From Octopus sinensis (Eukaryota), in assembly GCF_006345805.1 (NCBI RefSeq), contig NC_043007.1, positions 74,524,001 to 74,588,000 of the forward strand: a stretch of 64,000 nt of DNA, in the 5' to 3' direction. A program made the position numbers and the translations under genes. Within the stretch, counting starts at the first letter, position 1. Each line of letters starts with the position of its first letter. This document shows, in pieces, positions 15,826 to 46,979 of this stretch. Below the pieces are notes generated by a model. The model was not told the DNA's origin, did not search any database, and worked only from the letters and a program-made list of their open reading frames with translations.

Positions 15826-16011
15826 ATGGACATAAACAAAATGAAAAATAAACTAGCTGAAAAGAAGTACTACTATATCTCACCAACAACCAAGAGAAAA
15901 ATAATTGAGGTGGCCTTCTACTTGGGCTTAATGGCTTTCCTTAGTATTTTCATGGTGGTGTATTATGTATTTCTGTATTCCCCAAAGAAAAGGAGTATAT
16001 ATCATATGTAA
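15826..16011 (+). CDS. inaF: InaF-motif small membrane protein 1 (61 aa)
   Basis: accATGg start; MDINKMKNKLAEKKYYYISPTTKRKIIEVAFYLGLMAFLSIFMVVYYVFLYSPKKRSIYHM. Basic N-terminus, one TM helix, motif VAFY-x13-YYVFLYSP; donor AAG|GTAAGA at 16210/16211. Confidence 0.75.
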   Translation: MDINKMKNKLAEKKYYYISPTTKRKIIEVAFYLGLMAFLSIFMVVYYVFLYSPKKRSIYHM

Positions 16012-16612
16012 CCATCTATTCACTGAAAGTGTCATTAATCCACAATTCTTGCACTAGTTTGGTTAGTAATGTAATTTAGGTTATTTAACATGCATCAGTT
16101 TTAGTGTACATGAACAAACCATAATATTATACACACTTTGTCAAAGATTTTAAAAGACATTTGCTGAGAAGACAAATACAAAAAGAATTCTGATGAAAAA
16201 AATCAAGAAGGTAAGAATTAGTTTTTCTTTGTTTAATTCACGTTAGATTAAATGAGAATATGAGAATATGTAAATCTATAGTCACATGTGACTTTCACAT
16301 GTGAAAGTCACATGACCATGATTCAATGATGTCATAAAAATCTTCAAATCACTTGACTCAGAGCAAAAGGAAGATCTCATCAGATTCATTTTCTTTTAGT
16401 GATAGAGGAAGATATCATTATCTTCTTATACACCTTGTCAATATATTATATATATATATGTGTGTGTGTGTGTGTGTGTTCATGTGCGCACGTGTGTGTG
16501 TGTATGTGTGTGTGTGCGCGCACGTGTGTGTGTGTATGTGTGTATATATATATAGTTGCCATGATAGATCATTAGCCACTGCACGCATTTTTTTCTCTCC
16601 TTGTTTTTTTCT

Positions 16613-16656
16613 GTGTCCCTTTCTGTAGAAGAGCGTAGGCTCGAAACGTAAAAGAC
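16613..16656 (+). ncRNA. Minimal hammerhead-like motif (variant core CUGUAGA) in a Penelope-like repeat
   Basis: cttt-CTGTAGA-a-GAGC-gtag-GCTC-GAAAC-GT-A-aaag; sister copies at 51436-51478 and 59182-59222. Confidence 0.45.
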
Positions 16657-17034
16657 ATTTTCTATTCCTAAGCGTTATACTAATACATCTGTTTGTTTTG
16701 TACACCACCTGTCTTCCTCTTTTGTTTTTTTTATAAACTCTCTTTATATAGTGACGTATATTTGCCATTTAATATCAATATATTTCCTCTTAGTTTTTAA
16801 TATTGATTTCAAATTTTGGCATAAGGCCAGCAGTTTTGGGGGAGAGGGTAAATCAATTACATCAACCCCAGTACTCAACTGGTAATTATTTTATCAACTC
16901 TGAAAGGATGAAAGGCAGAATTTGAACTAAGAACATGAATACAGATGAAATATTGTTAAGCATTTCACCCAGCATGCTAATAATTCTACCAGCTCACTGT
17001 CTTCCACTTATTTTTAATATTATGAAGTCATTGC

Positions 17035-17630
17035 AGGTGGTGAGCTGGCAGAATCGTTAGCATGTCAGGTGAAATGCTTAGCGGTATTTTGTCTGCCATT
17101 ACATTCTGAGTTCAAATTCCGCCAAGGTCAACTTTGCCTTTCATCCTTTTGGGGTGGATTAAATAAATACCAGTTACGCACTGGGGTTGATATAATCGAC
17201 TTAATCCATTTGTCTGTCCTTGTTTGTCCTCTCTGTTTAGCCCCTTATGGGTAGTAAAGAAATAGGTATTTCGTCTGCCATTACATTCTGAGTTCAAATT
17301 CCGCAAAGGTCAACTTTGCCTTTCATCCTTTTGGAGTGGATTAAATAAGTACCAGTTACGTACTGGGGTTGATATAATCGACTTAATCCATTTGTCTGTC
17401 CTTGTTTGTCCTCTCTGTTTAGCCCCTTGTGGGTAGTAAAGAAATAGGTATTTCGTCTGCCATTACATTATGAGTTCAAATTCCGCCGAGGTCGACTTTG
17501 CCTTTCATCCTTTTGGGGTGGATTAAATAAGTACCAGTTATGCACTGGGGTCGATATAATCGACTTAATCCCTTTGTTTGTCCTTGTTTGTCCCCTTTAT
17601 GTTTAGCCCCTTGTGGGCAATAAAGAAATA
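17035..17630 (+). mobile_element. SINE family B with its body tandemly triplicated (~181 bp unit)
   Basis: gtatt(t/c)gtctgccattacatt recurs at about 17084, 17266 and 17447. Confidence 0.85.
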
Positions 17631-18517
17631 AGAATCATTAGCATGATGGACAAAATGCTTAGCAGCATTTCATCCCGTCTTTACATTTTGTGTTCATATT
17701 CCACCAAGGTCAACTTTGCTTTCTCAATAAAATAAGTATCAATTGGTATCAATGTAAGTGACTTAACTTCTTTCTCCAAACTTGTGCCAAAATTTGAAGC
17801 CATTATTATCAAATATTGATGCTGAATTTTGGTATTCCTAAAGAAAACTAATTGGGAACTATTTCTCTGTTTCTCCATGGTGTAGCTTCATCATTTCTAA
17901 TCTTCTCTATTAAGTATTGACCTTTATTCCAAGTAAGACTTCCCAATTTGCCAAAAGGAAATCATTATTCTACAAAGTGTCTAAATGGAGGCAGCAAGCT
18001 GGGTGACTTGTTAGCATGTTGGACAAAATGCTTAGTGACACTAGTTCTGGCTCTTTGCATTCTGAGTTCAAATCCTTCTGAGATCAACTTTGCATTTCCT
18101 TTCTTTACAGCTAATAAAATAAAGTACCAGTCAAGTACTGAAGTCAATGTAATAATTGTTTGCTCCCTTCAAAAATTGCTGTCCTTGAATGCTACAATAG
18201 TATTGTATCCTGTTCAGAGGGAATGTTGTGTTCTTGGTTAGTTACATGCCATAGAAACCAGGTAACTGGTCTTGTAAATCTTAGGGCTCAAGAATAAGAG
18301 TGACAATGGGACATATCTGGACCATTGCATCTTGAATTTTATTTCATAATTTCATTTTTGTCTCTAGCTTAAAAGCAGTGATGCTAGAATCAGTAGAGTA
18401 CTTGGTGAAAAGCTGTGTGGTTCACAGTCATATCTCTTAACATTCTGAGTTGAATTCCCATAGAGTTAAACTTTAATTTTCATATTACATGACCAATAGT
18501 CAGGTACTGATGATCAG

Positions 18518-44200: not shown

Positions 44201-44640
44201 AAATGAACGCAAGAATATCTGATTCATAAATTTGTTCTCATGCTCGTGTGTTGATTGCTGGTGACAGACATATACTTCAAAGAACGCCGCCGAAGTGATA
44301 GGAAGGTAGGAAACAGAGTCAGTGAAAAAGAAAGGAAATAGCGATAGTGACAGATACTTTAAATACACGTAGTGGCATTCTGAAAGTATAAATGAAGAGG
44401 GTGACCGGTACTGGAGGAAATAGGGTGAGGTAGGAAGATGGCCCCTAGAAACCACAGCTTTTAAGATAGGGATTTCTAAGGTAGCCCACGCGCATCGTCA
44501 CCTCATTCTACATGTCCCTGTAAATTTTGGATCGAATCGGACGGAATGTAGTGGCATTGAAAGCGAACCAAGCGGTAAAAACGCAATTCAGTTTTATATA
44601 TAGAGATAAACGTATATAGATAAATAAATAAATAAATATA

Positions 44641-44750
44641 TATATCACGTTGAAAGCACCGGTTCTCATCTGATCACCGAAGTTAAGCAAAGTCGAGCCT
44701 AGTCAGAACTTAGATGGGTGACCGCTTGGGAAACCTAGGTGCAGTAAGCA
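44641..44750 (+). pseudogene. 5S rRNA: 5S rRNA-derived copy lacking its ~10 5' bases
   Basis: cacgttgaaagcaccggttctcatctgatcaccgaagttaagcaaagtcgagcctagtcagaacttagatgggtgaccgcttgggaaacctaggtgcagtaagc closely follows the metazoan 5S sequence, including box A/IE/box C. Solitary copy with several substitutions. Confidence 0.85.
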
Positions 44751-46478
44751 TAGCACATTGCATAAAGGCGGTGCTCCAGCATGGCCGCAGTCAAATTACT
44801 GAAACAAGTAAAAGAATAATAAAAGAATAAAAGAATATGTATGTATGTATGTATTGTAGTATATATAAATGGATATATATTTATATATATATATACATAT
44901 ATATATATAGATATGTAAATGTAAAAAAATACAAACTGGGACAAAACGTGAAACATTTAGAAGACGATACAAAAAACAAGGACGGGACATTCGAAGTCTT
45001 CAATCTTCAGTCAAGAACCGGATCATCTTCGCAATTTCGACTGATTAATCTTGAGATTGCTCCGATCTGGCCAGCCCCAAAGGAAAATCTAAGCCAAGCG
45101 CATTAGATTCCTTGGAAGAAAGCCTCGAATGTATACAAAACAAGGACGGAAAAACGGACGATGTTACACGAATAAAAATACAAAAATACGTAAAAACAAT
45201 AATGATTATAATAATAACAACAAAAACAGGGTGTCACAGACAAGCGTCTTATATGAATAATATAATACATCTAATATTATTAATAATAATTGATTATTGT
45301 GCAAGCTTACAAATGTAAATATGTATGTAAATTCAAGTGTATATATATGTATTTATGTATATTTATATATGTAATGCATATGTCTATGTATAAGTTTGTG
45401 AATGTGTGCGTATTTATTTAGAACTTAACCTTATGTACTTTCTAAAATCTCTGACGAAGCCTAGAGAAACGCCCAAGAACCTCAATTTCATCTACTTATT
45501 ACTTCAGTCTGCTGGAGGAATAAAGGTAGAATTAGGTATTTTTGCCTCTTGGCTGAAACAGCTGTAAGATATTTTTTCCCAATTTATATTCCTGTATGTT
45601 ATATTTTTAATAATGACTGGTATCCTTTCATATTAATATATTTTATATGTAAAGCATATGTTATACATGTATGTATGTATATTCTTGCAATTGTCATTTT
45701 AGTAAATAAATAAATAAGTTAACATAATATGTCTAAAAGTTGATGAACCACCTATTGTCCCCGCCATTTTCTTATTGCTCTCTCTCTATCTCTCTCTCTC
45801 TCTCTCTCTCTGTATATATATATATATATATATTATATATATATATATATATATATATATATAATATATATATATATTATGTGTGTGGTGTGGTGTGTAT
45901 GTGTGTGGTGTGTGTGTGTGTGTGTGTGTGGTGTGTGTGTATGTCTGCACGTGCATATATGAAATAAATGAATAAATAAAGAAAATAATGTAAAAACAAT
46001 GCAATAAGAGTAGACATGTGTTCAGATTAGCGGAGTTTACTTGCAAAGCTTCTTACGTCATAGAGAGAAATCTATCTGGTGCGAATAATTTAGTCAACCC
46101 CATTATAGAACCCAGCCTAGTCATTTTTAATGATTAGTATACATTAAGTATTATCAATAATCGGCTTTTTAATCTTTATTTTCAAATAATTTACCTACTT
46201 TTCAAGAGCGAATCTTCACCGTATTTTGTCACGCTATACAAATTAAATAATTGCCTTAATATAAGTAGATTCATTTACAATACGTATAAAGGAGTTCTAT
46301 GATAATAATAGTAATAATAGAGGTTTATAGTGTTTATCTAGAATAATTGGCGTGCAATAGCTTAGAGATTCTCAATCAATACCGAAAAAACAGTTCCTGA
46401 AATCATTTCAGATATAGCTTTACGAGCAGAGGTACCTGGAGCTTTTAGTTAAAAGAGCTAAAAGATTTCTTTTTGAAA

Positions 46479-46754
46479 ATGGCAGATTCGGTTTCTCTGA
46501 CAGTTCCTGAAGCCCCACGAAGAAAATCTTCCTCGCCACCAAAACTTGCTGGTGGTGGAGATACCAAACCAGTTTCCCCGTTTCAAATTTTGTCATTTAA
46601 AATGTTTATGGTTGTCATTTATCTCAGTATCGGTTTTGGACTTGCATTCTTTCTTGGCATCTATTACCTTTTTCTGTGGGAACCAGTACGAGGAAATTAC
46701 AGCCAACACCATATATATATCGGACATTCTTCAGCAGTATTCCACCCTCAATGA
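46479..46754 (+). CDS. inaF: InaF-motif small membrane protein 3 (91 aa)
   Basis: aaaATGg start; MADSVSLTVPEAPRRKSSSPPKL...FKMFMVVIYLSIGFGLAFFLGIYYLFLWEPVRGNYSQHH...; motif VVIY-x13-YYLFLWEP; candidate acceptor tcatttcag| at 46411 and donor AAG|GTTCGT at 46794/46795. Confidence 0.85.
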   Translation: MADSVSLTVPEAPRRKSSSPPKLAGGGDTKPVSPFQILSFKMFMVVIYLSIGFGLAFFLGIYYLFLWEPVRGNYSQHHIYIGHSSAVFHPQ

Positions 46755-46979
46755 AAGAAACATAAAAATCAAAGAAATTTAGACGCTAAGAAAGGTTCGT
46801 TGTTTTTTGAGTATTCTTCATGTTAACTTTTAAATTTAACCTACATGCTTAGAACCACTCACACACCCACGTTATAAATAAGTAAACTTGTATATGTGCT
46901 ATGTATGTATGTATGTATGTATGTATGTATGTATGTATGTATGTATGTATGTAAGTTTGCATGTATGTATGTGTGTCGT

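Follow-up and report, generated by a model that had tools for sequence, protein, structure and literature searches.

We analysed a 64-kb stretch of the Octopus sinensis genome (C11:74524001-74588000 on contig NC_043007.1, 34.5% G+C; hereafter called the window), taken from an assembly of 2.72 Gb in 13,516 sequences. It harbors part of what is very probably a tandem, same-strand cluster of conserved, cephalopod-specific genes for InaF-motif microproteins, organized as cassettes with a splice donor after the stop codon and with an inferred role of the TRPC type. The cluster is present as five assembled copies, most likely all of the InaF-motif family, is conserved in Argonauta hians, and has in its type-2 cassette a splice donor that is itself conserved. 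It is an undescribed and largely unannotated cephalopod expansion of a known family. In the window, the original prediction had pointed to three short open reading frames (ORFs) on the same strand, and all three are present with the peptides that it quoted:

15826-16011, + strand: ORF1, the type-1 cassette, encoding a single-pass microprotein of 61 amino acids (aa) with InaF-like spacing and without the VRGNYS tail
37329-37562, + strand: ORF2, the type-2 cassette, encoding a 77-aa InaF-motif microprotein with the tail PVRGNYSKHRTY...HPL
46479-46754, + strand: ORF3, the type-3 cassette, encoding a 91-aa InaF-motif microprotein with the tail PVRGNYSQHHIYIGH..FHPQ

The pattern Y-x13-YY-x3-[WYF]-x-P has exactly three matches in the six frames of the window, all on the + strand and each inside an uninterrupted ATG-to-stop ORF. 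Its strict form, V..Y-x13-YY-x3-[WYF]-x-P, occurs three times in the six-frame translation of the window and not once in 200 mononucleotide shuffles. ORF2 is preceded by an in-frame stop two codons ahead of its ATG and, because the start codons are conserved and in-frame stops lie a few codons upstream, each ORF of the cluster is complete.

Membership in the InaF family was assessed with the Pfam profile PF15018 (InaF-motif, labelled 'TRP-interacting helix'), for which the curated cut-off is 21.8 bits. The predicted identity was upheld for ORF2 (33.0 bits) and ORF3 (23.2 bits); ORF1 and its Argonauta orthologue remained below the cut-off at 19.7 and 18.8 bits, respectively, although PF15018 was their top family. 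Types 2, 3 and x exceed the cut-off in Octopus, Argonauta, Octopus bimaculoides and two other species, with orthologues scoring 23.3-35.2 bits. When a profile of ORF1 and its Argonauta orthologue was compared with the family alignment by hhalign, a probability of 95.4% (E = 1.8e-8, 34 columns) was obtained, and the Y, YY and P positions were in register.

Each ORF contains one hydrophobic window of 19 residues (Kyte-Doolittle 2.25-2.54) that overlaps the motif. An AlphaFold2 model of ORF3, built on an alignment of 11 sequences, consists of a single helix at residues 34-75, with a predicted local distance difference test score of 89-97 over residues 31-60 and the remainder disordered; a solved structure was not found for any relative. 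In copies 2-5, the helix is followed by a tail of the form [EDRH]-P-V-R-G-N-Y-S-x-H-[HR]-x-Y...H-[PS]-x, and ORF1 stops earlier. By likeness to vertebrate INAFM2, this C-terminal tail is probably extracellular. The O. bimaculoides type-4/5 protein A0A0L8FQV9 (P0008) has one Tyr at the otherwise invariant YY, which may reflect a true deletion or a mistake in sequence or annotation. Two distant non-cephalopod InaF-motif proteins, one from Nilaparvata lugens (P0010) and one from a Logan contig (P0012), have His-rich stretches right after the W-E-P end of the helix, so that His-rich juxtamembrane tails may be more widespread among the InaF proteins of invertebrates.

The original prediction had described a cluster of three cassettes. 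These three exist, and the count was incomplete, as two more copies on the same strand surfaced about 6 and 13 kb beyond the window end when the genome was searched with an O. bimaculoides paralogue (P0003):

C11:74594154-74594417 (window-equivalent 70154-70417, locus L037), same strand: fourth copy, ORF4, 87 aa
C11:74600819-74601082 (window-equivalent 76819-77082, locus L038), same strand: fifth copy, ORF5, 87 aa

The proteins encoded by these two copies are 86% identical to each other. The assembled cluster therefore counts five same-strand copies over 61 kb, at intervals of 21.5, 9.2, 23.7 and 6.7 kb. When all family members were compared by tblastn with the surrounding 154 kb (the window with 30 kb in front of it and 60 kb behind), these five copies were obtained and no pseudogene remnants or extra copies. 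Outside the 154 kb, the genome holds no copies of the cluster type, whereas repeats behave otherwise. ORF4 and ORF5 lie within a homology unit of about 775 nucleotides (nt) that is 90% identical between the copies, 6.7 kb apart, and that begins 428 nt ahead of the ATG and reaches 84 nt beyond the stop. Judged by these borders, the unit suggests a small duplication, or gene conversion confined to a functional cassette.

The closest homologues of the window ORFs are found in O. bimaculoides (90% identity), A. hians and Sepia. At the Argonauta locus (L036, 20 kb), four cassettes lie on one strand within 16 kb in the order 1 (61 aa), 2 (77 aa), x (91 aa) and 3 (91 aa), and the orthologues of types 1, 2 and 3 have the same lengths and order as the octopus ORFs. 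Type 1 is 84% identical at the protein level between Octopus and Argonauta, and ORF3 shares 90% identity with O. bimaculoides A0A0L8FQP3 and 76% with the Argonauta orthologue, all three being 91 aa long. Orthologues of type 2 are the 77-aa ORF in Argonauta and an 80-aa ORF in a third species (P0009). O. bimaculoides also has an x-type paralogue (A0A0L8FRJ6) and a type-4/5 protein (A0A0L8FQV9). Nucleotide similarity between Octopus and Argonauta is limited to the ORFs and short flanks. Selection was estimated according to Nei-Gojobori from the proportions of nonsynonymous (pN) and synonymous (pS) differences, and the resulting ratios of nonsynonymous to synonymous rates (dN/dS) are approximate because dS is saturated:

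Type 1, Octopus versus Argonauta: pN 0.09, pS 0.87 (saturated), dN/dS not computable
Type 2, Octopus versus Argonauta: pN 0.18, pS 0.70, dN/dS 0.10
Type 3, Octopus versus Argonauta: pN 0.13, pS 0.64, dN/dS 0.10
ORF4 versus ORF5 (young paralogues): pN 0.06, pS 0.12, dN/dS 0.45, 18 changes

The expected conservation of the ORFs was borne out by these comparisons, in synteny as well as in the dN/dS of about 0.1 for types 2 and 3 and the pN of 0.09 for type 1, and purifying selection on the three window ORFs is supported by the sequences. In a maximum-likelihood tree the orthogroups 1, 2, 3, x and 4/5 are strongly supported, and the whole cluster is separate from the canonical octopus copies and from insect InaF proteins.

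One member of the cluster is probably missing from the assembly. The x-type is known in O. bimaculoides (A0A0L8FRJ6), Argonauta (P0002) and a further octopod (P0004). An x-type orthologue was not found in the whole O. sinensis assembly, where the best match is ORF3 (62%), nor was an x-type remnant detected by tblastn between ORF2 and ORF3. This interval contains a gap:

43489-43588, no strand: assembly gap, at the syntenic slot of the missing x-type cassette

Because the Argonauta order 1-2-x-3 puts x between types 2 and 3, a cassette is predicted near this gap, and a sixth, x-type cassette probably lies unassembled in or near it; loss in the O. sinensis lineage is the alternative. The gap is located 5.9 kb past ORF2 and 2.45 kb ahead of the conserved block preceding ORF3, and lies among repeats: (TG)n, a 20-bp tandem repeat, a dispersed repeat to its left and a 44-bp tandem array to its right. 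It touches no conserved block and, because it touches no ORF, the reading frames of the cassettes are independent of it.

Conservation extends to non-coding blocks directly ahead of two of the ORFs:

15702-15825, + strand: block before the type-1 ORF, a candidate 5' untranslated region (UTR) or promoter; by blastn, window 15702-16020 aligns with Argonauta L036:183-506
46041-46478, + strand: non-coding block of about 440 nt before the type-3 ORF, a candidate promoter or 5' UTR

In the type-1 block (about 120 nt), the string cacactagtat...tttactg...acaaccATGGA is kept in the pairwise alignment of Octopus and Argonauta. For type 3, blastn of window 46041-46756 against Argonauta L036:15713-16450 gave 69% identity over 755 nt, with a core of 76 nt that is 85% identical. 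Only orthologous upstream blocks align, and no promoter motif common to different cassettes was found. A (CT)n-rich microsatellite lies directly ahead of the type-1 ORF in both species (window ~15640-15790 and Argonauta L036 ~100-250), and might be a conserved polypyrimidine promoter feature or a coincidence.

The original prediction had also placed GT donor-like sites after the three stops, at 16211, 37564 and 46795. All three were found as placed:

16208-16216, + strand: type-1 donor-like site AAG/GTAAGA, GT at 16211, 199 nt past the ORF1 stop, 10.3 bits, a weak candidate
37561-37569, + strand: type-2 consensus 5' splice site AAG/GTAAGA, GT at 37564-37565, about 1 nt past the TAA stop, 10.3 bits
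46792-46800, + strand: type-3 weak donor-like site AAG/GTTCGT, GT at 46795, 40 nt past the ORF3 stop, 5.2 bits

As a control, 234 ORFs of 55-100 aa from the 154-kb neighbourhood were scored in the same way; within 60 nt of the stop, 22% of them have a donor of at least 5 bits and 1.3% one of at least 10 bits. The donor right after the ORF2 stop is conserved in three species. A 19-nt string over stop and donor, catcctttataaggtaaga, is identical in Argonauta despite diverged flanks, and at the type-2 locus of the third species (L047) the site ACG/GTGAGT (11.2 bits) is present at the matching place. On score and position together, the type-2 site stands alone as a compelling candidate donor. The remaining sites are suggestive through conserved position: the type-3 site aligns with AAG/GTTTGT in Argonauta, types 3 and x have weak donor-like sites at +40 to +45 across four loci (+42 to +45 for the x-type), and types 4/5 have GAG/GTAACA at +12. 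The position of the type-1 site is not conserved (+199 in Octopus versus +53 in Argonauta, unaligned). The duplicated unit of ORF4 and ORF5 includes the +12 donor and contains neither an AATAAA nor an ATTAAA signal. A common acceptor or a conserved downstream 3' exon was not found when Octopus was compared by blastn and tblastx with Argonauta, Sepia and the third species.

Only nine matches at E ≤ 0.001 came out of a profile search against 1.84 billion representative proteins. Five of them carry the tail, one being from O. bimaculoides and the others from contigs that were traced via cluster mates or near-identical sequences to Sepia RNA sequencing (RNA-seq) or to an octopod; the rest are three distant InaF proteins (two from insects, one unassigned) and a low-complexity artefact. 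Among the proteins searched, the tail PVRGNYSxHH..Y...HP is present only in coleoid cephalopods. One tailed member is present in Logan contigs from 67 sequencing libraries. Among the runs traced, SRR19578100, SRR31864759 and related ones are whole-larva RNA-seq of Sepia esculenta (PMC11917092, PMC10141105), and SRR3011300 is a transcriptome of Sepia pharaonis (PMC5541922). Since it is found in contigs from Sepia RNA-seq, the tailed subfamily is coleoid-wide and transcribed in cuttlefish. The Sepia product has 93 aa and was extended to 131-151 aa by a gene caller that took TGA as Trp. Its RNA contig (loci L046 and L048-L057) measures at least 1.87 kb and has a single ORF; the unique 3' sequence behind it extends for no less than 1.4 kb and includes several AATAAA signals. 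Some Sepia contigs have differing 5' ends joined at varying positions, which are probably assembly artefacts. Two candidates were set aside: the 1424-aa protein P0006 with its 25 'matches' is a low-complexity false positive, and Logan contigs L032-L035 (P0004) end in dispersed repeats and look genomic, so that they were kept as an extra orthologue and not as transcripts.

Annotation has largely passed over these genes, as had been anticipated in the original prediction. The protein collections searched contain no entry for types 1 and 2, the Argonauta annotation calls one of the four cassettes, neither the three window proteins nor those of O. bimaculoides matched a record in exact look-ups, and word-based homologue searches with ORF1 and ORF2 found nothing. 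In the literature searched, no paper connects inaF with cephalopods, and a recent survey of cephalopod TRP channels makes no mention of auxiliary subunits (PMC13402157).

Elsewhere in the genome, InaF-motif genes of a more conventional kind are present. A genome-wide six-frame scan with PF15018 gave five places above the cut-off, of which two are ORF2 and ORF3 and three look canonical:

C11:29892114-29892215 (L001), - strand: canonical copy, 95-aa ORF, 63.9 bits, with a helix nearly identical to the vertebrate INAFM2 type
C11:29923868-29923957 (L003), - strand: canonical copy, 102-aa ORF, 35 bits
C11042:41580-41672 (L002), unplaced scaffold: canonical-like copy, 84-aa ORF, 56.7 bits

The two canonical ORFs on C11 lie 31.7 kb apart on one strand, with donor-like sites past their stops at +68 (CAG/GTAGGA) and +56 (AAG/GTAAGA). 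The window cluster is not orthologous to INAFM2 or canonical inaF: the canonical-looking copies lie elsewhere in the genome, and the cluster forms a separate clade.

Nothing but repeats and fragments of mobile elements separates and surrounds the cassettes. A Tc3-type transposase helix-turn-helix domain (50308-50721, + strand) matched at 45.7 bits, and a zf-RVT match at 27144-27440 (- strand) was weak. By eye, 30539-31180 (- strand) and 12867-13277 (+ strand) resemble tails of Tc1/mariner transposases; comparison of the suspected transposase fragments, these two included, with Pfam gave no match. A dispersed repeat of about 100-160 nt occurs in dozens of copies in both orientations (39951-40417, 41287-41903, 6341-7256, 9299-9613 and more) and repeatedly gives the same translated strings. 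It is also present in Argonauta and another octopod and resembles a short interspersed element. ARAGORN detected no intact tRNA in the window. About 12-15 kb before the window start lies a same-strand frame of 911 codons (L044:5277-8009, + strand, window-equivalent -14723 to -11991) with an RG-rich start, a sub-threshold PAM2 match and no Pfam family. The nearest conventional genes are two p25-alpha/TPPP blocks that run in the opposite direction. They lie 48-59 kb beyond the end of the window, the last cassette being about 35 kb away, and likely form the 3' boundary for any shared exon:

L041:7738-8424 (window-equivalent 111738-112424), - strand: p25-alpha/TPPP block, 106 bits
L042:9046-9609 (window-equivalent 123046-123609), - strand: p25-alpha/TPPP block, 20 bits

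We propose that the cluster arose by duplication before the split of octopus and argonaut and was then kept by purifying selection. Each gene would encode a single-pass membrane microprotein of 61-91 aa with the InaF motif as its transmembrane helix, and each cassette would be self-contained, with its upstream block, ATG and stop all conserved and its ORF uninterrupted. A 5' splice site would follow just past the stop, clearly in type 2 and plausibly in types 3, x and 4/5. The 3' end of the mRNA would then be supplied by at least one non-coding exon further downstream.

How such transcripts might end can be read in more than one way. We give a nearly even chance to an ordinary tandem array of independent paralogues, in which every gene has a separate promoter and a separate 3' UTR, the latter perhaps containing a private intron, and nothing is shared. 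Tandem duplication is a common fate of small genes, the irregular intervals between the cassettes are full of transposons, the orthogroups are old and diverged, and the O. bimaculoides entries are separate gene models; the long unique 3' sequence with its AATAAA signals behind the one ORF of the Sepia contigs points in the same direction. However, the cassette units contain no poly(A) signal, and the type-2 stop is immediately followed by a strong, conserved donor. Because of this missing signal and of the type-2 donor, at least one downstream exon is expected for each gene, and none is conserved nearby.

A complex locus like that of Drosophila inaF seems rather unlikely to us. The cassettes would then be alternative first exons, all of whose donors would be joined to one shared non-coding 3' exon past the last cassette, giving rise to cell-type-specific TRP subunits. 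The fly precedent, which the original prediction had described, is real: FlyBase lists inaF-A to inaF-D as an extreme case of genes with a common 3' UTR (PMC4528330), and INAF-B is an 81-aa ORF located in the first exon (PMC3433705). In the octopus, transposon debris alone separates the five same-strand cassettes from each other and from the convergent p25-alpha genes, a conserved block of its own precedes each cassette, the units that are conserved or duplicated stop soon after the donor and lack a poly(A) signal, the type-2 donor is kept in three species, and donor-like sites follow the stops of the canonical genes at C11:29.89 and 29.92 Mb as well, at a distance of 56-68 nt. Against such a locus stand the lack of a common acceptor and of a conserved non-coding block downstream in Octopus, Argonauta, Sepia and the third species, the weakness of the donors of types 1, 3 and 4/5, and the fact that a donor after the stop fits private 3' UTR exons equally well. 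Private 3' exons are at least as likely as one shared 3' exon. We consider still less probable the fullest form of a fly-like locus, that is a single transcription unit in which five or six first exons, each with an alternative promoter and a micro-ORF, would be joined to shared non-coding 3' exons, so that cell types such as photoreceptor, skin and sucker would each pick one TRP/TRPC subunit, its extracellular His/Tyr tail tuning the channel. Because the canonical octopus copies also have donors just past their stops, an architecture of the fly type may be ancestral to InaF genes.

Cephalopod eyes use phototransduction of the Gq/phospholipase C/TRP type, as in the fly. Apart from the INAF proteins, no dedicated auxiliary subunit of the founding TRP channel is known, and these proteins have hardly been characterized outside flies. 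The proteins of the cluster could be TRP/TRPC accessory subunits, a serious but tentative proposal based on homology with fly INAF-B/C and vertebrate INAFM2. The link between INAF and TRP is documented in the literature (PMC3433705, PMC13012068), and vertebrate INAFM2 (ROME) co-precipitates TRPC1 (PMC13012068). Candidate partner channels exist, as seven TRPC-type TRP_2 domain matches were detected in the genome, none of them near the cluster, and alpha-TRPC is eye-enriched in cuttlefish and octopus (PMC13402157).

We think it possible, though improbable, that these are real InaF-motif microproteins with partners other than TRP, for instance further membrane complexes or proteins of signalling pathways, the His/Tyr-rich tail perhaps serving in metal or ligand binding. 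The clade of the cluster stands apart from the canonical copies that resemble INAFM2 or INAF, and its tail occurs in no other group. ROME binds beta-catenin, and TRPC1 levels do not depend on ROME (PMC13012068). Further, the Sepia member comes from 67 libraries, and the ones that were traced were made from whole larvae or whole animals, which speaks against expression in the retina alone. However, the part that the cluster has in common with INAF-B/C and INAFM2 is exactly the TRP-interacting helix of Pfam, and ROME still co-precipitates TRPC1 (PMC13012068). Chance frames, pseudogenes or transposon-derived fragments, for which the low G+C content of the window and its many microsatellites and mobile-element fragments would provide many spurious ORFs, are extremely improbable and count as already refuted by syntenic Argonauta orthologues of the same length with saturated synonymous sites and a pN of 0.09-0.18, by five copies in 154 kb and none elsewhere in the genome, by Pfam matches above the cut-off and by a relative that is transcribed in Sepia.

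Several points weigh against the proposal of a conserved InaF-motif cluster with post-stop donors and a TRPC-type role. Types 4/5 reach 16.5-16.7 bits with PF15018, below the cut-off, and type 1, at 18.8-19.7 bits, also falls short of it; because a short hydrophobic helix can match profiles spuriously, the membership of type 1 rests on motif spacing, the hhalign comparison and the position in the cluster. The dN/dS values suffer from the saturation already mentioned, and purifying constraint is not demonstrated for ORF4 and ORF5, because their dN/dS of 0.45 is based on 18 differences. Donor scores were calculated with an approximate matrix, and donors other than that of type 2 are near chance by score (four of the five family ORFs reach 5 bits, compared to 22% of controls). 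The transcript support comes from a Sepia relative rather than from the octopus locus itself. Finally, the TRP link is one of homology only, and ROME, besides binding beta-catenin, reportedly acts through it, with TRPC1 levels independent of ROME (PMC13012068).

The conserved and expanded InaF set provides concrete candidates for TRP accessory subunits in cephalopods, two of which are absent from the protein sets searched, and is a clear case of conserved micro-ORF genes overlooked by annotation. The conserved order of a stop codon followed by a splice donor bears on whether the odd architecture of the fly locus is an ancient property of the family. In addition, a probable missing gene is flagged at the assembly gap.

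If a shared exon existed, the cluster would resemble the protocadherin alpha/gamma and UGT1A loci: the cassettes would follow one another in tandem, every one with a promoter block of its own and a terminal donor, and homology would not extend beyond the cassette (as for ORF4 and ORF5). In those loci, however, the constant exons contribute coding sequence and no stop closes the variable exon, whereas any constant exon in the octopus would be non-coding because every cassette closes its own frame, and the likeness is an analogy only. With vertebrate INAFM1/INAFM2, the octopus proteins have in common the PF15018 motif in a single transmembrane helix between disordered regions, likely with the N-terminus inside and the C-terminus outside. 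INAFM2 differs in that its gene exists in one copy, consists of one exon and encodes a glycoprotein of 153 aa whose extracellular domain is long (PMC13012068); the octopus window genes are shorter, clustered and more divergent (16-33 bits), and the closer look-alike is the canonical 95-aa ORF (63.9 bits). In the Drosophila inaF locus, too, separate ORFs on the same strand specify several small proteins that span the membrane once, by a helix containing the InaF motif. There, an upstream exon holds the entire ORF including the stop, with a splice donor behind it, and the octopus sequence suggests the same for type 2. The shared 3' exon and the binding to TRP are features of the fly that are hypothetical for the octopus. 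The octopus cluster differs from the fly locus in that it is not an orthologue but an independent, cephalopod-specific expansion that extends over more than 60 kb and bears the PVRGNYSxHH..Y...HP tail.

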